A stretch of DNA of 64,000 nucleotides, taken from positions 59,210,001-59,274,000 of the forward strand of contig NC_086118.1 of the NCBI RefSeq assembly GCF_963921235.1. The letters run 5' to 3'. Shown piece after piece: positions 4,620 through 63,680 of this stretch (position 1 is the first letter of the stretch; every line of letters starts with the position of its first letter). Source of the stretch: Mobula hypostoma. Lineage: Eukaryota. A program made the position numbers and the translations under genes. The notes beneath the pieces are model-generated. The model was not told the origin of the DNA. It did no database searches and worked only from the letters and a program-made list of their open reading frames with translations.

Positions 4620-4710
4620 GTGAGTCTTCCGTAGTTCACTGACATTAGTATCTCAGCTGTTTAGAGAAGTAATGTATGTTTTGAAAAATAATAATTGAAT
4701 ATTTCTGCAG

Positions 4711-4872
4711 ACCATCGAGAGCTTTGCAGCCCAGGAGAAACAGATGGAAGTGTGCGAAGTATGTGGTGCATTTCTTATTGTGGGAGATGCCCAGTCCCGG
4801 GTCGATGACCATTTAATGGGAAAACAGCACATGGGTTACGCAAAGATCAAAGCAACAGTGGAAGAACTGAAG
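4711..4872 (+). CDS. LUC7L3: LUC7L3 coding exon (162 bp), second zinc finger
   Basis: tttctgcag| ... |gttagt. Encodes TIESFAAQEKQMEVCEVCGAFLIVGDAQSRVDDHLMGKQHMGYAKIKATVEELK, the LUC7 ZnF2. Follows a 91-bp intron. Confidence 0.98.
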
Positions 4873-5981
4873 GTTAGTCTGTAGTCAGGACGTTGTAAAG
4901 GTTAGACCAGACCTTACTGTGGTTCTGCACTGTGGCAAAGACATACTCATGGGGTGGGGGTGGAATGTTCACCAGACTGATAATGGGCTAAAGGAGTATT
5001 TTTCAGGCAATTTGTGTGAATTTTGGTCTTTAAGCCTTTAAGTTTAAAAATTTAAATATTGATCCAATGGAGATAATGAGACATGGAATCTAATAGGTCC
5101 TTGTGTTGGTCTGTGCATTTAATGTTTCGTGTTTATTGGTTGCGTTTACTATGTTGGCAAGCAGACCAGTGTGCATGGTCTGCATTCTGTTGGGGGGTTG
5201 TTTGGCATGTATTAATGGAACGTGGAGCTTGTATGGAATTGACTTTATTACTTGCATCCTTCAAATAGGTGAGTAAAAATCTTTACGTTATGTCTCTGTT
5301 CAAATGTGCATTTGTAGTAATCTATAATATGTACAACAGGACAGTCAATATAACATAGAAGTACAGTTCTGTCAGCTTGAATTAATCAGTCTGATGGCCT
5401 GGTGGAAGAAGTTGTCCCGGAACCTGTTGGTCCCGGCTTTTATGCTGCGGTACTGTTTCCCGGATGGTAGCAGCAGGAGCAATTTATGATTGGGGTGATT
5501 TGGGTCTCCAATAGTCCTTCGTCTTTTTACACACCTGTCTTTGTAAATGTCCTGAATAGTGGGAAGTTCACAACTACAGATGTGCTGGGCTGTCCGCACC
5601 ACTCTCTGTAGAGTCCTGTGAATGAGGGAAGTACAGTTCCCATATCAGGCAGTGATGCAGCTAGTCAGGATGCTCTCAATTGTACCCCTGTAGAAAGTTC
5701 TTAGGGTTTGGGGTGGGGGGCATACCAATCGTCTTCAACCATTTGTGGTGAAAGAGGTGCTGTTGTGCCAGTGTTATGTACAGACCATGTGAAATCCTTG
5801 GTGCTGTTTATGCTGAGGAACTTAAAGCCATTCACCCTCTCAACTCCAGATCCATTTATGTCTATAGGGGTTAGTCTGTCTCTATTCCTCCTGTAGTCCA
5901 CAACCAGCTGCTTTGTTTTTGCGACGTTGAGGGATAGGTTGTTTTCTTGACATCACTGTGTCAGGGTCATGACTTCCTCTC

Positions 5982-7141
5982 TTTCAAAAGGCTTTTGACA
6001 AGGTCCCACACAGGAGATTAGTGTGCAAACTTAAAGCTCACGGTATTGGGGGTAAGGTATTGGTGTGGGTGGAGAATTGGTTAGCAGACAGGAAGCAAAG
6101 AGTGGGAATAAACGGGACCTTTTCAGAATGGCAGGCGGTGACTAGTGGGGTACCGCAAGGCTCAGTGCTGGGACCCCAGTTGTTTACAATATATATTAAT
6201 GACTTGGATGAGGGAATTAAATGCAGCATCTCCAAGTTTGCGGATGACACGAAGCTGGGTGGCAGTGTTAGCAGTGAGGAGGATGCTAAGAGGATGCAGG
6301 GTGACTTGGATAGGTTGGGTGAGTGGGCAAACTCATGGCAGATGCAATTTAATGTGGATAAATGTGAAGTTATCCACTTTGGTGGCAAAAATAGGAAAAC
6401 AGATTATTATCTGAATGGTGGCCGATTAGGAAAAGGGGAGGTGCAACGAGACCTGGGTGTCATTATACACCAGTCATTGAAAGTGGGCATGCAGGTACAG
6501 CAGGCGGTGAAAAAGGCGAACGGTATGCTGGCATTTATAGCGAGAGGATTCGAGTACAGGAGCAGGGAGGTACTACTGCAGTTGTACAAGGCCTTGGTGA
6601 GACCACACCTGGAGTATTGTGTGCAGTTTTGGTCCCCTAATCTGAGGAAAGACATCTTTGCCATAGAGGGAGTACAAAGAAGGTTCACCAGATTGATTCC
6701 TGGGATGGCAGGTCTTTCATATGAAGAAAGACTGGATGAATTGGGCTTGTACTCGTTGGAATTTAGATGATTGAGGGGGGATCTGATTGAAACGTATAAG
6801 ATCCTAAAGGGATTGGACAGGCTAGATGCGGGAAGATTGTTCCCGATGTTGGGGAGGTCCAGAACGAGGGGTCACAGTTTGAGGATAGAGGGGAAGCCTT
6901 TTAGGACCGAGATTAGGAAAAACTTCTTCACACAGAGAGTGGTGAATCTGTGGAATTCTCTGCCACAGGAAACTGTTGAGGCTAGTTCATTGGCTATGTT
7001 TAAGAGGGAGTTAGATATGGCCCTTGTGGCTACAGGGGTCAGGGGGTATGGAGGGAAGGCTGGGTTCTGAGTTGGATGATCAGCCATGATCATAATAAAT
7101 GAAGGGCCGAATGGCCTACTCCTGCACCTATTTTCTATGTT
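5982..7141 (+). mobile_element. Young 5'-truncated CR1 LINE (RT C-terminus and 3' UTR)
   Basis: GVPQGSVLGP and KFADDTKLG motifs, one in-frame TGA at about 6768, TTTCTATG tail. Nearly identical to 27500-28686. Confidence 0.93.
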
Positions 7142-7794
7142 TAGGCTGCCTCATTATTATTTGAGATTAGGCCAAACAGTGTAGTGCTGTGGGTGGGGAT
7201 ACAGTCATGGGTATACAGAAAGTAAAGGAGGTGGCTTAGGACACAGCCCTGAGGGGCATGTGTGTTGAGGGTCAGAGGGGCAGAGGCAAGGGAGCCCACT
7301 CTTACCACCTGCCAGCGATCTGACAGGAAGTCCAGGATCCAGCTACACCAGGCAGGGTGAAGGCTGAGGTCTCTGAGCTTCTTGTTGAGCCTGGAGGGCT
7401 GTTAAAGGCTGAACTGTAGTCTTAAAAACTCTCTCATAAGCATCTCTCTTCAGATGTGCAAGGACGATGTGTGGCTATTGTGTCATCTGTCAATTGGTTG
7501 TGTCGGTAGGCGAATTGTAGAGGGTTCAGTGTGAGTGGCAGCATGCTGCCCATTAGTCCTTGATCAGGTTCTCAAATCATTTGCTGCTTATTATTGTGAG
7601 TGTGACAGGACGCCAGTCATTCAGACATGTTACCTTGGTCTTTTTAGGTGCAGGGACAGTGGTGGATGTTTTGAAGCAGGGAGGCATGACACTGGGAGAG
7701 GGAGAGATTAAAAATGTCTGTAAACACACCTGCCAGTTGTGCCATGCACATCCTGAGTAATCGCCCTGGGATGTGGTCTGGTCCTGCAGCCTAG

Positions 7795-9410
7795 GGTAAT
7801 GGATGAATTGAAGGAAACTTATATTAGGCAGGAAATGGTGTTGGATAGGCTGTTGGGTCTGAAGGCTGGTAAGTCCCCGGGACCTGATGGTCTGCATCCC
7901 AGGGTACTTAAGGAGGTGGCTTTAGAAATCGCAGACGCATTGGTAATCATTTTCCAATGTTCTATAGATTTCAGGATCAGTTCCTGTGGATTGGAGGGTG
8001 GCTAATGTTGTCCCTCTCTTCAAGAATGGAGGAAGAGAGAAAACAGGGAATTATAGACCGGTTAGCCTGACGTCGGTGGTGGGAAAGATGCTGGAGTCAA
8101 TTATAAAAGATGAAATTATGACACATCTGGATAGTAGTAACAGGATTGGTCCGAGTCAGCATGGATTTACGAAGGGGAAATCGTGCTTGACTAATCTTCT
8201 GGAATTTTTTGAGGATGTAACTATGAAAATGGACAAGGGAGAGCCAGTGGATGTAGTGTACCTGGACTTTCAGAAAGCCTTTGATAAAGTCCCACATAGG
8301 AGATTAGTGGGCAAAATTAGGGCACATGGCATTGGGGGCAGAGTACTGACATGGATTGAAAATTGGCTAGCTGACAGAAAACAAAGAGTAGGGATTAACG
8401 GGTCCCTTTCGGAATGGCAGGCGGTGACCAGTGAGGTACCGCAGGGTTCAGTGCTGGGTCCGCAGCTGTTTACAATGTACATTAATGATTTAGATGAGCG
8501 AATTAAAAGTAACATTAGCAAATTTGCCGATGACACAGCTGGGTGGCAGTCTGAAATGTGAGGAGGATGTTATGAGAATGCAGGGTGACTTGGACAGGCT
8601 GGGTGAGTGGGCAGATGCAGTTTAAAGTGGGTAAATGTGAGGTTATCCACTTTGGTAAGAACGGGAAGGCAGATTATTATCTAAATGGAGTCAAGTTAGG
8701 AAAAGGGGAAGCACAATGAGATCTAGGTGTTCTTGTACATCAGTCACTGAAAGCAAGCATGGAAGTATAGCAGGCAGTGAAGAAAGCTAATGGCATGCTG
8801 GCCTTCATAACAAGGGGAATTGAGTATAAGAGCAAAGAGGTCCTTCTGCAGTTGTACAGGGCCCTGCTGAGACCACACCTGGAGTACTGTGTGCAATTTT
8901 GGTCTCCAAATTTGAGGAAGGACATTCTAGCTATTGAGGGAGTGTAGTGTAGGTTCACAAGGTTAATTCCGGGGATGACGGGAGCGACTGGGCTTGTATA
9001 CTCTGGAATTTAGAAGGCTGAGAGGGGATCTTATTGAAACATATAAGATTATTAAGGGATTGGACACGCTGGAGGCAGGAAGCATGTTCCCACTGATGGG
9101 TGAGTCCAGAACCAGAGGCCACAGTTTAAGAATTAGGAGTAGGCCATTTAGAACGGAGTTGAGGAAAAACTTTTTCTCCCAGAGAGTGGTGGATATATGG
9201 AATGCTCTGCCCTAGAAGGCTGTGGAGGCCAAGTCTCTGAATGCTTTCAAGAAAGAGATGGAAAGAGCTCTTAAAGATAGTGGAATCAAAGGTTATGGGG
9301 ATAAGGCAGGAACTGGCTACTGATTGTGGATGATCAGCCATGATCACAGTGAATGGCGGTGCTGGCTCGAAGGGCCGAATGGCCTACTCCTGCACCTATT
9401 GTCTATTGAC
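7795..9410 (+). mobile_element. 5'-truncated CR1 LINE of a different, older subfamily
   Basis: RT motifs GNYRPVSLTS, YLDFQKAFD and KFADDT, with frameshifts. CTATTGT-type tail. Confidence 0.9.
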
Positions 9411-11246
9411 TGTCCGCCCATTGGAAATACCGGTGTACTTTGGCCTCAGATGACCAAGCTGCCAGTGGCATCCTGCAGGTCTCCTCAGAGGCTCAGTATT
9501 GGTGACGTTGAATCGGGCGTTTAAAAAAAAAGATTTTGTTTGTCTGGGAGAGAGGCATTGATATTGGAAACTCCACTGTGTTTAGCTTTGAAGTCTGCAA
9601 TGGTGTGCAGACCTTGCCATAAGATGTGTGTGTTGTTGGTGGAAAGTTGAGTCTGAATCTTGTCTCTGTATTGTTTCACTGCTTTGATGACTCTGTACAG
9701 ATCGTAGCTACATTTCTTTAGCTCTTGTTGATTACTGGCAATGTAAGCTCTATGTTGCGCTGTAAGTGCTGCTCGCACAGAACTGTTGATCTAGGGTTTC
9801 TGATTCAGGAAGACCCTGACTGATTTCTGGGGGACAGCATCCTCGATGCACTTCCGGATGAAACTCGTGACCTCTTCCATGAACTCGGGAGACATCCTCA
9901 TCATGGAAGACATTCCAGTCAACTTCATCAAAGCTGTTCCTTAGCATGGTTGGACCAACAGTGGATGGTTTTAACTATGGCGGCCTCTTGTTTCAGCTTC
10001 TGCCTGTACTTTGGCACCAGAAAAATGGAAGAGAAATGACTAAAGTCTCTCTGAAGTTTTGTCAGCACATCCAGTGTTTTGTAAGCATTGCGGAAGGGAG
10101 AGTAGCAGTGTTCGAGTATGCTATCTCCCTGTGTGCTTACCTGGATGTGCTGACAAAACTTCAGAGAGACTTTAGTCAGCGATGCTCTATTAAAGTCTCC
10201 GTGAAGATGAAGACAGCCTGCGATGTATTATACACAGCTGTGAACTCCCTAGGCAGTCAGGGAGGCCTACACAGCAGCACCAGGTACTCCAGATCTGGGG
10301 AACGAAAGGATTTGAGGGCATTCACATTCCGGGAGTCGCACCAGGCATTATTGGCTATGCATTGTTTGAATATTACATACATAGAACATTACAGCACAGG
10401 CCTTTCGGCCCTCGAGGTTGCACCAACCTTTTAACTTCTTCCAATATCAATCTAACCCTTTCCTTCCACATAGCCCTCCATTTTTCTCTCATCTGTGTGC
10501 CAGTGTAAATCTCTGAACTGTCCCTTGTATATCTGCCTCTACCGTCACCCCTGGTAGCGTGTTCCATGCATTCACCACTCTAAACATGATGTACCTCTGG
10601 CACTAAGATAGTGTAGTGGTTAGCATGCTATTACAGCTCGGTGTCAGTTCAGAGACCGGTCCTGGCATCCTTTAGGGAATGTCTGTTGTCCTCCTACAGT
10701 CTGAAGATGTACAGGGTTGCTTAATTTGATAAGTTGTACTGCGATTAAATTTAGGGTTAAATTGGGGTTGTCAGGGGTTGCTGGGTGGCCTGGTTCAAAG
10801 GGATGTATCTCTATAAAAGATAAAATAATCTCCCCTATATTTCTCTCCAATAACCTTAAAATTATGTCCACTCATGTTGGCTATTTTCATACTGGGGGAA
10901 AAAGGTTTCTGGCTGGCCATTTGCATTATGCTTATCTTGTGCACTTCTATCAGATCATCTCTCTCCAGAGAGGGGAAAATCCCTAACTTCAACTTTCCTG
11001 ATGAGACTCATTCTAATCCGGGCAGCATCCTGGTAAATCTCCCGTACACCCTCTTTAAAGTTTCCTGTGAGGTGACCAGAACTGAACTGGAATGTATAAC
11101 TGTGCTCAAGCGTTGACGAACAGGAGAATGTTTAGGCTGCTGTAGTGTATTTGTGTTTTAGAAGAGGGGTGATTATGATTGTGCAAGGGATGTGTTGGTC
11201 TGTGTGGAGCTTGTGTGCTCGTGTTCATGTGTTTCTTTCTGTCCAG

Positions 11247-11536
11247 GAGAAAGTTCGGAAAAAGACTGAGGAACCAGAACGTGATGACAAATTAAAACGA
11301 GAACGAGAAGAGAGGGAGCTGGAACGTGAGCGAGAGCGTGAGGAGCGGGAGAAGAAACGTCGTCGGGAAGAGGAGGAGAAAGAAAAAGAGCGGGAGCGTG
11401 AAAGAGAGGCGCGTCGGAGGAGGAGTCACTCACGTAGTCGACACTCTCACTCCAGCCGAGCGTCTGAGCGGCGACGGAGCAGATCACGAGAACGCAGGCG
11501 TTCCCGCAGCAGAGAACGAGAGAAGAAACGGAGCAG
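11247..11536 (+). CDS. LUC7L3: LUC7L3 coding exon (290 bp), RE/RS domain
   Basis: ctgtccag| ... ag|gtattt. Encodes EKVRKKTEEPERDDKLKRERE...RRSRSREREKKRS. Confidence 0.96.
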
Positions 11537-12079
11537 GTATTTCATGCGATAGCATACTGGAGAGGAGTTTCCGGCCTCTCTGTATCTTGTGGTCAGTGAT
11601 CCCTTCTGTTCTGGAGTTTTCCAGGGTTCATTATGATTCCCTTCCCGACAGGTGGAATGTGGCAGGGTCCCTGTTAGCCTGCGGGGTCTCATCCTTGCGT
11701 GAGCGCATTAGAGTAGACGACATGGTATGGGATCCATCCCTGCATGATTTCCTGTTTAGTCTTTTTCAGTGCCTGGATTCACAATCGCATCGATTTAGCC
11801 TGGAAATAAAACCTGTTCTGCCACCTGCATTAAGCAGTGTTTAAGTGTTGTCTATGTGAATGGTCTTCTCAACCACTCTACCAACTTGGGTGGCAATTTT
11901 GAGGAATCTATGAATGTGGATACCAAGATCCTTCTGTGTCTCCACGCTACTACCAGAGGGAACCAGTGTGTCTGAACAGTTAGTGGAGAGGTTGTGGAGA
12001 TGGATCTTGGTAAAACCTCAAAGATTGAACATGGTCCAGCTAATATTCTGAGCTGTGTGTGGGGATGAACTCAGGTCAT

Positions 12080-13750
12080 GGGTCAGCTTCCGGAATGAGA
12101 CTCAATATTCTGGGGCTCCGTTGTTCTTGGATGTGACAGATTGGGAGGGATTAAAGGACGAGGGGGTGGTGTTACCAGTTGGAAAATGACACAGTAGTCC
12201 TCGCAGGACAGACTGGAGAACTCGTCTAGTGAGGCGTTATGAGCAGAACTGTGAAATAAGAAAGGCACGGCCACATTAATGGGGCTATATTACAGACCTC
12301 CCAATGGTGCTAGAGATTTAGAGGAGGAAATTTTTAGAGAGATTAGACTTGCAAGAAACATAAGGTTGTTATAGTAGGTGATTTTTGACTTCCACATATT
12401 GACTGGGATTCCCATAACATCATAGGACTAGATGAAATATTTTGTCAAATTTTAGATCTGTATTTACTCAGGAGGTAGATACAGTCTGTAGAAGTGAGGC
12501 CATGTAGGACCTTGTACAGATTGCAAGAGGAGGTATTTTGCTATCCTGAGGGCCTCAAGTGCAGAAATTGCCAGGGCCCTAGTGGAGTTATCTAAATTAT
12601 CCTTAGTGACAGGAGAGGTACCAAAGCATTGGAGAATAGCCAATGTTGTTCTGCTGTTTAAAAAAGGCTCTAAACATAGACCAGGAATTTATAGGTGGGT
12701 GAATCTGACATCAGTTGTGGGAAATTTACTGGAAGGTATTCTAAGGGACAGGATATAAGTATTTGATAGACATGGACTGATTAAGGATAGTCAGAATGGC
12801 TTTGTGCATGGAAGGTCATGTGTAACCAATGTTATAGAGTTTTTCTAGGAATTTGCCAGGAAAGTGGATGAAGGCAAGGCGGTGGGTACTGTCTGTAGGG
12901 ACACTAGCAAGGCATTTGATGAGGTCTTGCAAGAGAGGTTGGTCAAGAAGATTCAGTAGCTAGGCATTCATGATGAGGTAGTAAACTGGATTTACTACAA
13001 GGGGTCAGTGCTGGGTCCATTGTTGTTTGTCATCCATATCAATGATCTAGATGATAATGTGGTTAACTGGATCAGCAAATTTGTAGATGACACCAATATT
13101 GGGGGTGTAGTGGACAGTGAATCAGGCTATCGTGGCTTGCAGAGGGAGCTGCATCAGGTGGAAAAATGGCAGATAGAATTTAATGCAGACAAGTGTGAGG
13201 TGTTGCAGTTAGGGAGGAAAAACCAAGGTAGGGCTTAGTAGGGCACTGAGGAATGCAGAAGAACAGGGATTTGGGAATACCTATCTATAATTCCTTGGAA
13301 ATTGCATTGCAGGTAGGTAGATTCATAAAGCGTTTGGCAAGTTGGTCTTCATAAACCAAATATTGAATACAGTAGTTGGGATATTGTGTTGAAATTGTAT
13401 AAGGCATTAGTGAAGCCTAATTTGCAATGTTATGTGCAGTTTTGGTCACCTACCTGCAGAAAATATTTAGATTGAAAGATGCAGCGAGAATTTACAATGG
13501 TTTTGCCGGGACTTGAAAACCTGAGTTATAGGGAAAGGTTGAACGAGTTTCGACTTTATTCCTTGGATCATAGGAGAATGAGCAGAGATTTGATGGAGGA
13601 GTATAGAAGGGTAAATGAAGCAGGCTTTTTCCACCGAGGTTGGGCAAGATTAGACCTGGTGGTGGTGGGTTAAGGGTGAAAGATTTTTGGGAGAACACTT
13701 CACTCAGGTTGGTGACATGTGTGGAACAAGCTGCCAGTAGTGGTGGTGGA
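12080..13750 (+). mobile_element. Old, internally deleted CR1 LINE ORF2 remnant
   Basis: Fragments LGPLLFVIHINDLD...KFVDDT and endonuclease-like YYRPPN, with many lesions. Confidence 0.75.
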
Positions 13751-32661: not shown

Positions 32662-32952
<291 letters not shown>

Positions 32953-38045: not shown

Positions 38046-38770
38046 ACCAGGCACTGCTCACACTGAGCAGGTTACGGAGGAGTGGGAAGCTGCCTGTAGC
38101 AGCACAGCGGGGAGATGCAGGAGGGAAGAACGCCGGACAGGAGGAGGAGCAGACATGAGTGAATGAGAGGGATGGCCACGGTAGCACAACACTATTACAG
38201 CTTGGGGCACCAGAGTTCAGAGTTCAATTCCAAAGTCAGCTATAAGGAGTTTGTACATCCACCCCATGAAATGTGTAGGTTTCCTCTGGGTGACTTGGTT
38301 TCCTCCCACGGTGCAAAGATGTACCAGTTAGTGGGTGAATTGGTGATTGTAAATTGTCCTGTGATTAGGCTGGGGGTAAGTGGCCAGTTGCTCGGCGGTG
38401 CAGCTCAGAGGGCTGGAAGGTTGTATCTCTGTGTCTTCAGAAGTGCATCTTCCTTGAATTACCACAGCTGCTTTGACCCAGCCACCCACTGCCCTCATAC
38501 TAGATGGGAGGTTACTGGATACACTCGCTCTCAGAAACTAATACAGAAAGGTCGGCCCTCCCTCACACAGCGACTCCCTTTCAAATAGCAGGTTGTTTAA
38601 AATGTTGAATAAATCTGGGGAAACAGTTGCAGTGGGTTCACAGTCAAAGTGTCCCTCAGCCTGAGGGTTTATCCCTTGGCTATCTGTGATGGTCCCAGTT
38701 CTGGCTAGGGGCTGCCCTCTCCTACCTGACTCTCCCCCCCACCCCCCCCAACCCCAGGTTCCCCTAGTAC

Positions 38771-39084
38771 CTGCAGAGAGAAGTAAAGGCAGGCAACAGG
38801 AATAGACGGCAGCATGCTGAGTGGGATGAAGTGAGCCAGCACTAGCAAGGTGGACAGAACTTCAAAGAAGCAGAGCAGGAAGTCCTCCGCACAGGCCGGG
38901 ATCCGGTTGTCGATGGTGTCCACGTCCTGTGAGAAGCGGTTCATAATTCGGCCGGCTGGGGTCAGCTCAAAGAACTGCATGGGACAGCGGAGGGTGTGGT
39001 TAAGCAGGTGAGCATGCAGGAGGCTAGAGGCACGGACACAGCACACTACAAATAGCAGATGTGACGTAACGTAGGACAGCGCGC
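38771..39084 (-). CDS. ABCC3: Duplicate ABCC3 exon 23 ('23b', 314 bp), candidate mutually exclusive exon
   Basis: Stop-free: (G)ALSYVTSHLLFVVCCVRASSLLHAHLLNHTLRCPMQFFELTPAGRIMNRFSQDVDTIDNRIPACAEDFLLCFFEVLSTLLVLAHFIPLSMLPSIPVACLYFSLQ. Acceptor ccctgttctcatccacag with a TAAC branch-like motif; donor CAG|GTACTA. Phase 1 to phase 0, the same as exon 23a. Confidence 0.85.
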
Positions 39085-40089
39085 CTGTGGATGAGAACAG
39101 GGTGTTACTGCCCCAAAGAACCATCAGAGGATCTGAACAATACCCAACAATACCTTGGGCTCTCCACGGACACTGACAGGGAGATGGGCATAACTTTGTT
39201 TGCCTATTTTCTTACAAAAACATGTTTAATATAAATTATACTCTTCAATACCACACCAGAGACAAAGACTGACTAACAAAAACTAAATTAAAATATTCCC
39301 ATCACAAACAAGAGAAAACCTGCAGATGCTGTAAATTCAGAACAACACACGCAAAATGCTGGAGAAACTCAGAAGGTCAGACAGCATCTGTGGAAAAGAG
39401 TGATCAGTTGACGTTTCAGGCTGACAACCTTCATGAGGACCTGATGCCTCAAAGCATCGACTGTTTACTCTTTTCCACCGATGCTGCCTGACCTGCTGAG
39501 TTCCTCCAGCATTTTGTTTGGGTTGGTACTCCCTGTCAAGAAGGGCACTTATCCCCTGCAGTGCCCAATGATCCCAGAATTCCTCCTTGGTACCCACGGA
39601 CACTGTTGTGCCCTCTCCACAGTAATCCAAGCACAGACAATACCTCTGGAACATCACCTGGCAGTTGGCCCAGTCAGAACCCCCCGCTGCCCACATCCAG
39701 GACCCATGGATAGCAACCCTTGCTAACCTCAGGATGGAGTCTGCTAGGACTACTGGATGACTGCATAGAAATTTGGTGGGGCCATCCCTACTTGCCCTGG
39801 GATTATGACAGGACATTACAATTGTTTTGTTGTCATCTGTGATATGTTGCAGGAGCTTTCAAGAGACAGTGGGAAGGATAAAATGTGTAAGGCTGGGGAA
39901 CAAACAGCAGCTGCAGGGCAGGTTTAAGCAGCTGACTGATGCAACACTCTCCTGCCCTGAATGTTCCCCTCAATCTCTGACCTTCCCTCCAGTTTCCAAG
40001 TCACTCACGAAAACATCTTCACCCGACATTCTTGGTGCTGTCTGCATTAACAATTCTCATCACCTGTCTCGGTCAGAATAATATGATGA

Positions 40090-47121: not shown

Positions 47122-47432
47122 CTGAACGAGAATGTAGACCAGGACCAGTGGCACTATGATTAAAGTGAACCACGGTGTGCTGATCATGATTACTATCATT
47201 GTGGACAGGGAGATGAAGAATGTTGCGAGGAACATCTGGAATGTGATTGGGATCACTTCGTCAATCACGTTAATGTCCTTGCCGAAGCGATTGATGATGC
47301 GCCCGATGGGTGTGGTGTCATAGAATGCCTGAGGTGTGTGCAACTTGTTGTCCAAGAGCTGTGAGTGGAGCTGCCGCGCAGCACCCAGGCCTCCGACCAT
47401 CAGTGTGAAGGAGGCGATCATTACTAGCAACC
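47122..47432 (-). CDS. ABCC3: ABCC3 exon 23 ('23a', 311 bp), TM13-TM15 region, canonical copy
   Basis: Encodes (G)LLVMIASFTLMVGGLGAARQLHSQLLDNKLHTPQAFYDTTPIGRIINRFGKDINVIDEVIP...LVYILVQ. The NKxxxPQ motif is ABCC3-like. Confidence 0.95.
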
Positions 47433-48221: not shown

Positions 48222-48429
48222 CCTGTGTTAGGCCGAGAGCTGCATACACCCCTACCCGCAGTCGGGTTGTGTCGGCCGTCTTGTTGTTGTCAGCGTCGTT
48301 GGTCCAGTCACTGAGCCAGAAGTTGGCACCGATCGCCGCGGCATTCTGGCAGCAGTATAACAGGCAAATGAGCAGGGAGCTGCAGGGGCCAACAGCCTTC
48401 AGGTACTGCCAGAACACCACCAGCTTCAC
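48222..48429 (-). CDS. ABCC3: ABCC3 exon 22 (208 bp), TM12
   Basis: Encodes VKLVVFWQYLKAVG...AAIGANFWLSDWTND...RVGVYAALGLTQ(G). Ends in phase 1. Confidence 0.95.
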
Positions 48430-48661: not shown

Positions 48662-49597
48662 ACCCCCCCACACCGACTGCCCAGCTTGGCAATGGCCAAC
48701 CCCTCCACCTGCACCCCCACACCGACTGCCCAGCTTGGCAATGGCCAACCCCTCCACCTGCACCTTCTCACCGACTGCCCACCTTGGCAATGGCCAACCC
48801 CTCCACCTGCACCCCCACACCGACTGCCCAGCTTGGTAATGGCCAACCCCTCCACCTGCACCTTCTCACCAACTGCCCAGCTTGGCAATGGCCAACCCCT
48901 CCACCTGCACCCCCACACCGACTGCCCAGCTTGGCAATGGCCAACCCCTCCACCTGCACCTTCTCACCGACTGCCCACCTTGGCAATGGCCAACCCCTCC
49001 ACCTGCACCCCCACACCGACTGCCCAGCTTGGCAATGGCCAACCCCTCCACCTGCACCTTCTCACCGACTGCCCACCTTGGCAATGGCCAACCCCTCCAC
49101 CTGCACCTTCTCACCAACTGCCCAGCTTGGCAATGGCCAACCCCTCCACCTGCACCCCCACACCGACTGCCCAGCTTGGCAATGGCCAACCCCTCCACCT
49201 GCACCCCCACACCGACTGCCCAGCTTGGCAATGGCCAACCCCTCCACCTGCACCTTCTCACCAACTGCCCAGCTTGGCAATGGCCAACCCCTCCACCTGC
49301 ACCCCCACACCGACTGCCCAGCTTGGCAATGGCCAACCCCTCCACCTGCACCCCCACACCGACTGCCCAGCTTGGCAATGGCCAACCCCTCCACCTGCAC
49401 CTTCTCACCGACTGCCCACCTTGGCAATGGCCAACCCCTCCACCTGCACCTTCTCACCGACTGCCCAGCTTGGCAATGGCCAACCCCTCCACCTGCACCT
49501 TCTCACCGACTGTCCACCTTGGCAATGGCCAACCCCTCCACCTGCACCTTCTCACCGATTGCCCAGCTTGGCAATAGCCAACCCCTCCACCTGCACT
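48662..49597. repeat. 49-bp tandem repeat, about 19 copies
   Basis: Unit CCGACTGCCCAGCTTGGCAATGGCCAACCCCTCCACCTGCACCCCCACA with two recurrent variant sites. Confidence 0.95.
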
Positions 49598-49849: not shown

Positions 49850-52233
49850 AAACCACCCCAACCCCAGAAACCCCAACCCCAGCCCGCATCAGACCCCGGA
49901 AACCCCAATCCCTCCCTTCATCAGACCCCGGAAACCCCAACCCACCCCGCATCAGACCCCGGAAACCCCAACCCCAGCCCGCATCAGACCCCGGAAACCC
50001 CAACCCCAGCCCGCATCAGACCCCGGAAACCCCAACCCCACCCTGCATCAGACCCCGGAAACCCCAACCCCACCCCGCATCAGACCCCGGAAACCCCAAC
50101 CCCACCCCGCATCAGACCCCGGAAACCCCAACCCCACCCCGCATCAGACCCCGGAAACCCCAACCCCAGCCCGCATCAGACCCCGGAAACCCCAACCCCA
50201 GCCCGCATCAGACCCCGGAAACCCCAACCCCAGCCCGCATCAGACCCCGGAAACCCCAACCCCACCCCGCATCAGACCCCGGAAACCCCAACCCCACCCC
50301 GCATCAGACCCCGGAAACCCCAACCCCAGCCCGCATCAGACCCCGGAAACCCCAATCCCTCCCCTCATCAGACCCCGGAAACCCCAACCCCACCCCGCAT
50401 CAGACCCCGGAAACCCCAACCCCACCCCGCATCAGACCCCGGAAACCCCAACCCCAGCCCGCATCAGACCCCGGAAACCCCAACCCCACCCCGCATCAGA
50501 CCCCGGAAACCCCAACCCCACCCCGCATCAGACCCCGGAAACCCCAACCCCACCCCGCATCAGACCCCGGAAACCCCAACCCCACCCCGCATCAGACCCC
50601 GGAAACCCCAACCCCAGCCCGCATCAGACCCCGGAAACCCCAACCCCAGCCCGCATCAGACCCCGGAAACCCCAACCCCAGCCCGCATCAGACCCCGGAA
50701 ACCCCAACCCCAGCCCGCATCAGACCCCGGAAACCCCAACCCCAGCCCGCATCAGACCCCGGAAACCCCAACCCCAGCCCGCATCAGACCCCGGAAACCC
50801 CAACCCCAGCCCGCATCAGACCCCGGAAACCCCAACCCCAGCCCGCATCAGACCCCGGAAACCCCAACCCCAGCCCGCATCAGACCCCGGAAACCCCAAC
50901 CCCAGCCCGCATCAGACCCCGGAAACCCCAACCCCAGCCCGCATCAGACCCCGGAAACCCCAACCCCACCCCGCATCAGACCCCGGAAACCCCAACCCCA
51001 CCCTACATCAGACCCCGGAAACCCCAACCCCACCCTGCATCAGACCCCGGAAACCCCAACCCCACCCTACATCAGACCCCGGAAACCCCAACCCCACCCT
51101 ACATCAGACCCCGGAAACCCCAACCCCACCCCGCATCAGACCCCGGAAACCCCAACCCCACCCCGCATCAGACCCCGGAAACCCCAACCCCACCCCGCAT
51201 CAGACCCCGGAAACCCCAACCCCACCCCGCATCAGACCCCGGAAACCCCAACCCCACCCCGCATCAGACCCCGGAAACCCCAACCCCACCCTACATCAGA
51301 CCCCGGAAACCCCAACCCCACCCCGCATCAGACCCCGGAAACCCCAACCCCACCCCGCATCAGACCCCGGAAACCCCAACCCCACCCCGCATCAGACCCC
51401 GGAAACCCCAACCCCAGCCTGCATCAGACCCCGGAAACCCCAACCCCACCCTGCATCAGACCCCGGAAACCCCAACCCCACCCTGCATCAGACCCCGGAA
51501 ACCCCAACCCCACCCCGCATCAGACCCCGGAAACCCCAACCCCAGCCCGCATCAGACCCCGGAAACCCCAACCCCACCCCGCATCAGACCCCGGAAACCC
51601 CAACCCCAGCCCGCATCAGACCCCGGAAACCCCAACCCCACCCCGCATCAGACCCCGGAAACCCCAACCCCACCCCGCATCAGACCCCGGAAACCCCAAC
51701 CCCACCCCGCATCAGACCCCGGAAACCCCAACCCCAGCCCGCATCAGACCCCGGAAACCCCAACCCCACCCCGCATCAGACCCCGGAAACCCCAACCCCA
51801 CCCCGCATCAGACCCCGGAAACCCCAACCCCAGCCTGCATCAGATCCCGGAAACCCCAACCCCAGCCTGCATCAGACCCCGGAAACCCCAACCCCACCCT
51901 GCATCAGACCCCGGAAACCCCAACTCCACCCTGCATCAGACCCCGTTAAACCCCAACCCCACCCTACATCAGACCCCGGAAGCCCCAACCCCACCCAACA
52001 TCAGACCCCGTAAACCCCAACCCCACCCTGCATCAGACCCCGTAAACTCCAACCCCGCCCTGCATCAGACCCCGGAAATCCCAACCCCGCCCTGCATCAG
52101 ACCCTGTAAACCCCAACCCCGACCTACATCAGATCCCGGAAACCCCAACCCCACCCTACTTCAGACCCTGTAAACCCCAACCCCACCCTACATCAGACCC
52201 TGTAAACCCCAACCCCACCCTGCATCAGACCCC
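49850..52233. repeat. 32-bp C-rich tandem repeat, about 74 copies (G4-forming on the - strand)
   Basis: Unit CAGACCCCGGAAACCCCAACCCCA(C/G)CCCGCAT. Confidence 0.97.
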
Positions 52234-59019: not shown

Positions 59020-62000
59020 GGGAGGTTCCGGTGACGTCTTTGTTCAGAATAACAGTTTAAATCAATAGCTCCTTTGGATAAACACATATTTTGCCCCATT
59101 AATCCATCAAATATAAGATGTTTCGAAAATATCTGAATTGATAAGGGGGGCAAGAATGGGGAAAAAGAATGGAGATTAAACAAATCACAGTGGAACCTAT
59201 GGAAGAGAGAGGTGCAACGCGCGGTTCTCCTACACGTGCGCATGGCGGTGAGGCTGACGCGGGGCCTCGTGCGCACGGCTCTCCTACACGTGCGCATGGC
59301 GGCGAGGCTGACGCGGGGCCTCGTGCGCGCGGCTCTCCTACACGTGCGCATGGCGGCGAGGCTGACATGGGGCCTCGTGCGCGCGGCTCTCCTACATGTG
59401 CGCATGGCGGCGAGGCTGACACTGGGCCTCGTGTGCGCGGCTCTCCTACACGTGCGCATGGCGGCGAGGCTGACGCTGGGTCTCGTGCGCGTGGCTCTCC
59501 TACACGTGCGCATGGCGGCGAGGCTGATGCTGGGTCTCGTGCAGGCGAAGCGGCAAATATGATAAAGATTCTGGAAGAGATAAGGAAGTCCAAAAAGATA
59601 TAAAACAGCAACTAAATGATATAAAGTCAGAGCTCGCCAATGCCAATCAGAAAATAGCGGTGGCAGAAACTCAAATTGAGAAGGTGGAAGATCGCATGCA
59701 AAACGTGGAACAGACACTAAGTCAGACGATAAAAATATTAAATCAACAGGAAAGTAAATTGCTTGACCAGGAGGGAAAATCGCAACGGAAAAATATCAGG
59801 ATTTATAATGTTCCCGAAGGAGCGGAGGGATTGTCGATGATGGACTTTGTAGACAAGCTGCTGCGGGAAGCGCTGGAGATTCCCCCGACTATGGAGATGG
59901 AAATGGAAAGGGTGCATCGTTCACTCGTCCCGCGGCCTCCCAGAGACAGAGATAGTAAACCGCGGTGAATTGTACTTAGATTCCTTCGATTCAAGAGCAA
60001 GGCATAGATTCTACGAAGGGCCTGGGGTAAGAAGAGGGTTTTTGGAACAGGAAGTTAATATACTTCGATCATGATTACCCCCCGGCGGCCCTACAGAAAC
60101 GGAAGGAATATTCCGAAGCAAAACGAATATTAAAGCAAGAAAAGATTAAATTCCAAACCCCGTACCCTGCTAAACTGAGGGTATTTTACCAAGAAGGGAT
60201 GCGACTGTATCAGACGGTGGAAGAGGCGACTACAGACATGAAAAACAGAGGACTGTCCTTTAGCGTGGTCAAACCAAGGGAAAGTCTGGCTGAGCAGTTA
60301 TTCCGATCTGCTAAGGAAATAGTAAGCGAACCAAGAAATCAGGGGATGGGAGTAGGACGAGAGAAGGATATTAGGAAGAGACTGTGAGTTCTCCGAGGAC
60401 AGCCCTCACCTCCTCCAGAAGAGCCATAAGGTTTGGCTAAATTTAAAAGTGCTGATAAACTAAACGGAAGCAAAAATAGACAGTGATATACCTATCTTGA
60501 GAAATACGTATTATAATGTGGATTTCATATTACTCAATTTTTAAAAATTCATTCATCCATTCCTTTTCCCCCACCTAAATGAGAATATATATATGGGAGG
60601 AATACACAGGGAAATCATTTCTGTGTAATGGACATAGTTTTTTTTACTTACTTTTATAGGTACTACAGCAGGGGCCCTCAACTCACAGGTAGGAGGGGCT
60701 ATCCCCCACAGCTAGACTTTTCTTCTAGCTCAACCCAGGGTCATCTAGAGACCCCAGCCTTGGAACCACACCTTTGTTACCTTTTTTTTTTATTATTTGT
60801 GTTTCTTGGCTCTTATTTGTTCAGGGAGTAGATCGATTAAGTTATATTCTGCAAATTTCAATGATACACTAACAGATAAATACACATGGCTAAGGACAAA
60901 GTAAAATTCATTTCTTTTAATGTCAATGGGCTGTTGAATCCAGTCAAGCGCAGTAAAATTCTATCAACAATGAAAAAAAGAACAAGCCCATGTAGTATAG
61001 TTACAGGAAACTCACTTAAGTGATAATGAGCATGGGAAATTAAAGAGAATGAGTTTCACTAATTTGTTTTTCTCCTCATATAAATCAGGACATAGAAGAG
61101 GAGTTGCTATTCTCATCTCAAGCAAGCTAAATTTTGAAAAAGTATTCGAAATGGGAGATAAGGAGGGCAGATATATTCTGGTAAGGGAGAATATAGATGG
61201 AAATCCAGTTACTTTATTGAATATACACACACCAGGAAGTGATATTAGTTTCTTCCAGAAAATTACTAATATTATGGTAACGGAAACAGGTGGTCTCTTG
61301 ATATGTGGGGGAGACTTAAATTTACAATTACAACCAAAGTTTGACTCTTCCAATAGAAAAACTTATGAAACAAAGTCCTTACCTAAGAAAGTTAACACTC
61401 TTTTTGAGGGTATTGGTCTAATTGATATATGGAGGAACCTTTTCCCCGACAGAAGGGATTACACTCATTATTCTGCTCCCCATTCCGTATATACAAGAAT
61501 AGACTATTTCATAACATTTGGAAAAGATAGAGACAAAATAATCACCTGTGGAATTGGGACAATAGATGTAAGTGACCATGCACCTATATATTTATCTGTT
61601 GATTTTGACCTACAACCAAAGAATACTATTTGAAAACTAAATTCAAGTCTACTCAATGATCCCTATTTTAAGGAACAAATTAAAAAAGAAATTGGTCTTT
61701 ACTTAGAATTCAATGATAATGGAGAGGTTTCACCTGCCATTCTATGGGATACTCTGAAGGCTGTCTTAAGAGGGAAAATTATACTGATATCTTCATATAA
61801 GAAAAAAATAAGGAATAAAACATTAGAGGAATTACAAAATAAGCTGAAGGAACTAGAAAAAAACACAAATTGAGTTTGGCTCAGGATACACTAGAGGAAA
61901 TTAAGAATGAAATTAATAGTTTGGCTACACAAGAAATTAGAAAAAATTCAATGTTTCTGAAACAGAGACACTATGAAAGTGGATCTAAATCTATGAAAAT

Positions 62001-63680
62001 TCTGGCGTGGAAACTGAAAATAAAGATAGCAGAAAATACAATTCATAGAATTAGGGATCCAAGAACAAAAGTGATAAAAAATAAACTAAGTGAATTGAAG
62101 AAGCTTTTGAAATGTTTTACAAAACTCTATATTCCAAAGTTCCAAGGGGAAGCATAACCCAAATTGACACCTTCCTGAATTCTTTAGAGTTACCCACTTT
62201 AAGCAAAGAACAAGATAGAACAATGACTGCTGACATAACTGAAGCTGAACTAAAAACTGCAATTAGCAGGCTTAAATTAAGCAAATCACCAGGATCAGAT
62301 GGATATAGAGCAGAGCGGTATAAAGAGTTTAGAAGTGAGTTAATTCCTGTTTTACTCCCCACACTGAACTGGGCCCCAAGAAAGGCGCAAATGCTACTCA
62401 GCTGGAAGGAGGGGATAATGCTACACCGAAAGAAGGCAAGGATAAAATGGAATGTGGATCATTTAGACCAATATCTGTTCTTAATGTGGATTATAGAATA
62501 CTTACCTCCATCATGGCCAAATGATTAGAAGAGTTTCTACTCACACTGATACATAATGATCAGACAACAACGCCAAACACAAGACAATATATGAAGGACA
62601 CTTCACATTATGGATCGTATAAAAAAATGAAATTGAAGCAATAGTGATGAGCGTGGACGCTGAAAAGGCATTTGATTCGGTTAATTGGAATTTTCTTTAC
62701 AGAGTTTTACGTAGATTTGGTCTACATGACACAATTATTAAAACTATCCAGGCACTATACGACAATCCTACTGCCAGGATTACAATCAATAGATATTTAT
62801 CTAATAGTTTTACCATAGAAAGGAGCTCGAGACAGGGTTGTGCATGGTCACCGCTACTCTTCGCATTATATCTGGAACCATTAGCTCAATACATCAGACA
62901 AAATGAAGATATCAGGAGAATTACTATTAAAGGGACAGAGCATGAATTGGCCTGTTACTCGGATGACATTTTGATCTAACTAGGGCAACCAACATACTCT
63001 TTACCTAAATTGATGCAAACCTTTGAACAATATGGGCAATTATCAGGAGACAAGATCAACAAAGATAAAATCCAACTACTTTCATATAACTATAGCCCAC
63101 CAAGAGATATTGAAAGTAGATATCCTTGGGCATGGCAAACAGAGTCCATCAAATATTTGGGCATCATTATGCCAAAAGATTTGCCAAAATTATCAGAACG
63201 AAATTATCAGCCTATATATAAAAAAATTAAGGAAGATATAACAAGATGGAATCTAATTCCTTTCCTTGGTCTTAGTTCAAGGATTGAATCTATTAAAATG
63301 AATATACTGCCCAGACTACTATATCTCTTTCAGACCCTACCAATAGAGATTAACCAAAATCAATTCAATGAATTGAACAAGATGCTATCAAGATATATAT
63401 AGCAAGGTAAAAGGCCTAGGGTTTGTCTCAAAACTTTGCAATTAGCCAAGGAAAAGGGAGGACGGGGCCCTACCTTCTCTTAGAGATTACTATTTTGCAG
63501 CACAGTTGAGAACCGTGATATGCTGGTGCAACCCATCATATGATGCTCAATGGAAAAACATTGAGGAGAGGATACTTTCCATCCCCATACAGGCAATTTT
63601 GGCTCATAACAACCTTCAAAGTTACATAAATAATATTGACAACCCGTGGGTGAAATGGACTCTTAAAATTTGGAAAACTA
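59020..63680 (+). mobile_element. Fish-type L1 LINE with intact 5' end: 5' UTR, ORF1, spacer, ORF2 EN and RT (disabled)
   Basis: ORF1 RKNIRIYNVPEGAE and ERVHRS; ORF2 from about 60886 with [41 protein letters not shown] and YSDD. Scattered stops and frameshifts. Inserted after a TAAAAAAAA target. Confidence 0.9.
59220..59543 (+). repeat. 54-bp x6 in-frame repeat inside L1 ORF1
   Basis: Encodes (RGSPTRAHGGEADAGPRA)6 with minor variants. Confidence 0.92.

Follow-up and report, generated by a model that had tools for sequence, protein, structure and literature searches.

The stretch of Mobula hypostoma DNA analysed here (64,000 nucleotides; hereafter the window) contains two homologous versions of one exon of an ABCC transporter gene, 23a and 23b, the second of which places three acidic residues in a helix that lines the substrate pocket of related pumps. 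The question raised by this locus is whether 23b is a working part of the gene and, if so, what it does to the transporter. The basis on which MRP-type pumps select substrates is still being established from structures, and an exon switch that occurs naturally and alters the charge of a single pocket-lining helix, with no other change to the protein, is a ready-made experiment in substrate selectivity. The interpretation we favour, with moderate confidence, is that 23b is a functional, mutually exclusive alternative to 23a, most likely the counterpart of the b-type exon found in other fishes, and that it retunes an anion pocket rather than creating a cation pump.

Searches of the window with fish and invertebrate ABCC proteins (tblastn) showed that its minus strand carries the 3′ part of one ABCC gene, which on sequence grounds is assigned as the orthologue of ABCC3 (MRP3). 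ABCC3 exports glucuronides, bile salts and steroid conjugates. Among solved structures the best match of 23a is human ABCC3 (E 1.5e-29), followed by ABCC2 (3.7e-22) and MRP1 (1.4e-19). In a maximum-likelihood tree 23a falls inside the fish ABCC3 a-type clade (support 99/98) as sister to all ray-finned-fish a-type exons, consistent with its origin in a ray. On the plus strand, convergent with ABCC3, a LUC7-domain exon (Pfam PF03194, 83.6 bits) is located at 4699–4881, which fits the neighbourhood on human 17q21, where a LUC7L3-like gene presumably adjoins ABCC3. Further downstream of this exon, at 11136–11549 (plus strand), there is an open frame rich in Arg, Glu and Ser, as is typical of a LUC7L3-like tail. 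Open frames resembling reverse transcriptases, of LINE-type retroelements, occur at 5973–8558, 12498–13235 and 60000–63400, and such elements make up much of the intergenic and intronic sequence.

The gene is read on the minus strand, the strand of all exon coordinates that follow. Exon 22 (48222–48429, 208 nt), identified by tblastn with fish ABCC3 and with its splice sites and junction codons read directly, is followed by 23a (47122–47432, 311 nt), the canonical, a-type ABCC3 version, and, 8 kb away, by the alternative b-type 23b (38771–39084; 314 nt, comprising 2 nt and 104 codons). Exon 24 (32663–32862, 200 nt) is common to both isoforms, and the remaining ABCC3 exons 3′ of it extend to approximately 21022 (tblastn). 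Both versions of exon 23 thus lie between exons 22 and 24, bounded by AG and GT, and their translations are 38–39% identical (tblastn). They match the same part of Pfam ABC_membrane (PF00664) above threshold, at profile positions 58–156 and 58–158; the scores of 23a, 23b and exon 24 are 65.9, 57.2 and 35.1 bits, respectively, at consecutive profile positions. No third copy of exon 23 was detected by tblastn in the 64-kb window.

Either version of exon 23 joins exon 22 in the same phase. The final G of exon 22 combines with the first two bases of either exon 23 to give a Gly codon (GGG with 23a, GGC with 23b), and both exons finish on a full CAG codon followed by a GT donor. In 23b the AG acceptor is preceded by a pyrimidine-rich tract, the donor is GTACTA and the phase is identical to that of 23a. 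As 311 and 314 nt both leave a remainder of 2 modulo 3, inclusion of both exons, or of neither, destroys the frame, and 23a followed directly by 23b runs into a stop after 12 codons. Neither length being a multiple of three, only a choice of one exon or the other gives a full-length protein. A U12-type donor was considered as the cause of mutual exclusion and rejected, because GTATCTTCC, the donor of 23a, differs from the U12 consensus and that of 23b is GTACTA. The intron that precedes exon 22 contains two large minisatellites, at 48671–49596 and 49861–52233, one with a 49-nt unit in 19 copies and the other with a 32-nt unit in 74 copies (96% match). These repeats explain the GC peak (up to 0.675) and extreme skew of this part of the window, and create long spurious open frames.

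The region encoded by 23b comprises the end of TM13, the cytoplasmic loop, TM14 and the start of TM15, and selection of 23b would replace this part of the transporter, the remaining protein being identical. The minus-strand translation of 39082–38771 includes RFSQDVDTIDNRIPACAEDFLLCFFE and that of 47430–47122 includes RFGKDINVIDEVIPITFQMFLATFFI, so that the strings quoted for the two exons in the first-pass annotation are found as written. The TM14 segment of 23a, IPITFQMFLATFFI, is uncharged. In the corresponding segment of 23b, IPACAEDFLLCFFE, the acidic residues are encoded by GAG (38887–38885), GAC (38884–38882) and GAA (38863–38861). Numbering was obtained from ungapped matches to solved chains, in which residues 5–93 of a 93-residue query correspond to 1042–1130 of the 1531-residue MRP1 chain 8vt4_A, which we take to follow human full-length MRP1 numbering; bovine ABCC1 chains are offset by one, the human number being the bovine number plus one. 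This ungapped offset assigns the Glu, Asp and Glu of 23b to human MRP1 positions 1092, 1093 and 1100, occupied in MRP1 by Lys, Met and Asn. The codons and the structure matches therefore agree with the initial claim that the equivalents of K1092, M1093 and N1100 are Glu/Asp/Glu in 23b and Gln/Met/Ile in 23a. The MRP1 string used in making that claim is consistent with the numbering from solved chains, and the Asp of the ID motif (1084 equivalent) is, as had been stated, kept in both exons. The net charge of the 1089–1100 segment changes from 0 in 23a to −3 in 23b. Other members of the family also show this pattern. A set of 124 ABCC-like segments, which are the best matches to 23b and hence biased towards 23b-like sequences, has acids at 1092 in 25%, at 1093 in 15% and at 1100 in 15%, and at all three positions in four segments. 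Positions 1093 and 1100, which are separated by seven residues and share a helix face, both carry an acid in 12 of the 124 segments, compared with approximately three expected if they were independent. This excess may point to a type of pocket with an acidic pair that recurs among uncharacterised ABCC proteins; the carriers of this pair are unnamed environmental fragments and provide no functional lead.

Comparison with close relatives shows that 23b retains an intact reading frame. All 104 codons are open in the correct frame, with 0 indels, in four species, whereas the flanks contain two indels in 232 nt. The exon differs from those of organisms B, C and D by 1.6–7% in DNA. The Glu (1092) and Asp (1093) codons are identical in these three organisms, while at the third site Glu is replaced by Asp (GAC) in organisms C and D. 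The expectation that the charges of 23b would be kept in its relatives is thus borne out to the extent that negative charge is present in three species, but with relatives only ∼7% diverged in DNA the conservation of three residues is a weak test. Selection on the exon as a whole gives a mixed picture. Across the four-species tree there are 17 non-synonymous to 11 synonymous changes, which is not distinguishable from neutral (p 0.30), and the 7.0% difference between 23b and its equivalent in organism D compares with about 4–5% in the flanking intron. When terminal and internal branches are separated, a split chosen after seeing the data and based on a single contig per run, the terminal branches display 4 non-synonymous to 9 synonymous changes (p 0.008 for constraint versus neutral) and the single internal branch displays 13 to 2.

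Four public runs were compared over 38471–39290 (820 nt around 23b) for signs that the exon is transcribed and spliced. In run X2, from organism B, a close relative, a 342-nt contig consists of exactly 38771–39085, with 5 differences in 315 nt, plus 27 nt whose reverse complement is the first 27 nt of exon 24, right after the AG acceptor at 32862. The identity of this tail to the start of exon 24 demonstrates a spliced 23b–24 junction at the predicted donor, and marks X2 as an RNA run. The spliced evidence comprises this one contig, from a relative species, which ends at the 23b acceptor; with the intact frame, it upholds the view that 23b is a real exon joined to exon 24. Run X1 is from organism A, which shows 0 differences from the window and is probably the same species. 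Its sole contig extends from within 23b into the upstream intron and, as it crosses the 23b acceptor, is unspliced. The runs of organism A contain 100% of sampled 23a words compared with 39–55% of 23b words, which suggests that 23b is a minor form in these samples. A contig in run X5 (organism C) matches exon 23b together with 33 nt of upstream intron; immediately after the last base of 23b plus one (window position 38770 and below) it continues into 333 nt unlike the window, with no GT donor there, and this tail may represent a rearranged intron or a chimeric contig.

These observations invite the explanation that 23b is a decaying exon, or a regulatory one that is not productive, spliced at a low level and often together with 23a, such that the frame-shifted transcript is degraded and the acids have no role at the protein level. 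The near-neutral substitution counts over the whole tree, the divergence of the exon, which is no less than that of the flanking intron, the weak donor, the sparse 23b words in organism A and the unspliced X1 contig can all be accommodated in this way, as can the early stop when both exons are included. We consider it unlikely, as a non-productive exon is difficult to reconcile with 104 open codons and the absence of indels in four species whose flanks do contain them, with the retention of every family-invariant motif, with purifying selection on the terminal branches or with the conserved, protein-coding b-type counterpart in bony fishes described below. A functional 23b that is chosen instead of 23a remains the preferred reading.

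An exhaustive search with 23b as query yielded no close relative, although it recovered gene models in which the exon is present in two to five tandem copies. In a protein library clustered at 50% identity the best match to 23b is 58% identical, and the top full-length matches are invertebrate MRP1-like proteins. The 104-residue query found no homologue among proteins of 57–182 residues, a search that is uninformative on full-length isoforms. One of the ABCC3 models, from a grenadier (a teleost), carries an a-type and then a b-type exon in series, and at its locus (Coryphaenoides rupestris contig PIJE02000232.1) the a exon precedes the b exon, with lengths of 311 and 314 nt and a spacing of ∼0.9 kb. 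With the grenadier b-type exon as query, ABCC3 proteins of ray-finned fishes were retrieved, 111 in all, in a range that includes bichir, eel and tarpon as well as cyprinids, salmonids and percomorphs. For the grenadier a-type region, the best 120 of 1106 matches were all from ray-finned fish except for one amphioxus model. In species with both forms among the matches listed, b is usually RefSeq isoform X1 and a isoform X2, and the b isoform is always one residue longer than a, for example 1544 versus 1543. Siniperca chuatsi and Gambusia affinis provide examples of such a/b isoforms, and in the bichir Erpetoichthys calabaricus the b-type is isoform X3. These isoform pairs show that the exon 23 switch, which seems widespread in fishes, is already in the database annotation of bony fishes; no paper describing a switch of exon 23 in fish ABCC3 was found in the literature searched.

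Ray 23b resembles the ray-finned b-type in belonging to the same gene, exon and phase, in being one codon longer than its a-type partner, in the acid at 1092 and in the FFE and DVDTID motifs. The extra residue occupies the same alignment column in both, and the b copy is downstream of the a copy in the ray window as in the one bony-fish locus examined, that of the grenadier. The two differ in TM14. The bony-fish b-type is highly conserved, with the motif IP(D/E)NIDIWMRTFWY providing acids at the 1089 and 1092 equivalents and Arg at 1096. This motif is absent from ray 23b, which reads IPACAEDFLLCFFE, such that residues 1089/1092/1093/1096/1100 are A/E/D/L/E in the ray and (D/E)/D/I/R/Y in bony fishes. 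As the acid at 1092 is the sole coincidence, Glu/Asp/Glu as a set is lineage-specific, and Asp at 1093 and Glu at 1100 are, as judged from these alignments, properties of the ray lineage.

Differences of this kind could mean that 23b and the bony-fish b-type are not counterparts at all, 23b having either evolved independently in cartilaginous fishes or been copied from a different ABCC paralogue. Consistent with such an origin, a maximum-likelihood tree (104 columns) sets 23b on one long branch and the bony-fish b-type on another, and the best solved-structure match of 23b is ABCC2 (6e-20), above ABCC3 (7e-13). Overall identity is uninformative in direction, 23b being ∼36% identical to the bony-fish a-type and b-type alike. 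Profile comparison, however, favours the b-type by 12 bits (78.8 versus 66.5 for the a-type). In AU tests a single b clade is not rejected (p 0.27, likelihood cost 3.0), and a constraint that joins 23b to the a-type, although not formally rejected either (p 0.18), is costlier (13.2). An independent exon would also have had to arrive at the same intron, a-then-b order, phase and one-codon excess. While a separate origin is a possibility that deserves some weight, we regard it as rather unlikely. A common origin of 23b and the bony-fish b-type is quite probable, and 23b is most likely the cartilaginous-fish counterpart of the ray-finned b-type exon 23.

The position of the acids relative to the substrate can be gauged from MRP1, in which E1089, M1093, S1097 and N1100 of TM14 contribute to a plastic substrate pocket; 23b has its Asp and second Glu on the M1093 and N1100 equivalents. 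Residues K1092, S1097 and N1100 of MRP1 were reportedly targets of older mutagenesis. In structures of bovine ABCC1, the ligands against which M1092 stacks are vincristine, estrone sulfate, verapamil, GSSG, LTC4 and a cyclic dinucleotide. Residues S1096 and N1099 bind the sulfate group of estrone sulfate as well as the dinucleotide's sugar-phosphate ring, and Q1088 (human E1089) contacts vincristine (PMC12647609). The human M1093A mutant displays changed drug susceptibility and altered handling of vincristine (PMC12647609). Judged by the contacts of bovine M1092 and N1099, two of the acidic positions of 23b, the 1093 and 1100 equivalents, face the substrate in ABCC1, its closest paralogue to have been well studied. 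The first-pass annotation had M1093 lining the LTC4-binding pocket, in keeping with the stacking of its bovine equivalent on this ligand, and had all three acids at positions linked to substrate selectivity; this is correct for 1093 and 1100, which contact substrates in the ABCC1 cryo-EM structures, but does not extend to 1092, as K1092 is absent from the text of the ABCC1 structure paper (2025 set, PMC12647609).

The arginines that anchor anions are encoded outside the exchanged segment. In ABCC3, Arg1193 and Arg1245 form salt bridges with substrates (PMC10886794). The ray keeps the anion-anchoring arginines (the equivalents of MRP1 R1197 and R1249, in ANRW and NWMVR), which are encoded at the exon 24/25 junction and in exon 26 and are thus common to both isoforms. 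With these residues in place, use of 23b would place Glu, Asp and Glu, at the equivalents of MRP1 1092, 1093 and 1100, on a TM14 pocket face that is uncharged with 23a, and the acids would be expected to sit beside the anion-holding groups of the pocket. They may weaken or reshape the binding of sulfate, glucuronide and glutathione conjugates, possibly pairing with the pocket arginines or, at the TM14 patch, repelling the anionic head group. The range of amphipathic anions handled by the b isoform, or its affinity for them, would then differ, without the protein becoming a cation pump.

A more radical proposal, made in the first-pass annotation, is that, with the three acids, the cavity becomes so negative that the b isoform shifts from organic anions to neutral or cationic substrates. 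The change in net charge of the 1089–1100 segment is in keeping with this view, as are the roles in ABCC1 of the 1100 equivalent, which helps to bind the sulfate group of estrone sulfate, and of the 1093 equivalent, part of the lining of a plastic hydrophobic pocket. The presence of the R1197 and R1249 equivalents in both isoforms argues against such a switch. So does CFTR, in which Asp993 of TM9, aligned to the 23b Asp (1093) by ungapped offset, faces the pore and forms a salt bridge with Arg352. CFTR, unlike ABCC3, is an anion channel, and the window excludes the TMD1 exons in which a partner arginine of the ray Asp would be sought; nevertheless, an anion channel with Asp at this position shows that an acid there does not by itself imply a non-anionic cargo. 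The bony-fish b-type, furthermore, displays a different pattern, with two acids and one Arg. The arginines in shared exons and the CFTR precedent leave the proposed shift unsupported, and we consider it improbable. A retuned amphipathic-anion pocket is the more economical, and in our analysis the more likely, consequence of choosing 23b.

Substitution of homologous exons is not peculiar to fishes. Mutually exclusive, homologous tandem exons are found in Drosophila mrp, C. elegans mrp-1 and human ABCC9, and the fly and worm events coincide in one structural region, yet were called unrelated; ABCC3 is unmentioned in that study (PMC9741552). The ray pair 23a/23b is a similar case in an ABCC-family gene. 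Mutually exclusive homologous exons in ABCC genes (PMC9741552) and, in database annotation, the a/b exon 23 of fish ABCC3 are therefore already known; what is new, as far as can be read from the sequence, is ray 23b as a divergent, b-type-like exon with an apparently unusually acidic TM14. Cartilaginous and bony fishes separated over 400 million years ago. If the a/b switch were older than that split, fish ABCC3 would be an ancient two-in-one transporter, in which neutral-pocket and acidic-pocket pumps serve different substrate classes, the ray lineage having become more acidic (net −3) and tetrapods having lost the switch, a scenario that is doubtful.

The existence of an alternative exon 23 pair also bears on genome annotation, as it explains why several fish gene models wrongly string both exons in series. 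Several bony-fish ABCC3 gene models (P0004, P0152–P0158 and that of the grenadier locus, L001) combine the two types of exon 23 in a single protein and look like annotation errors. In the amphioxus Branchiostoma floridae, residues 1061–1687 of a 2089-aa model (P0270) comprise five tandem exon-23 equivalents in series, most likely a mis-modelled cluster of alternative exons, and the residue at the 1092 equivalent across the five copies is Q, K, K, S and R.
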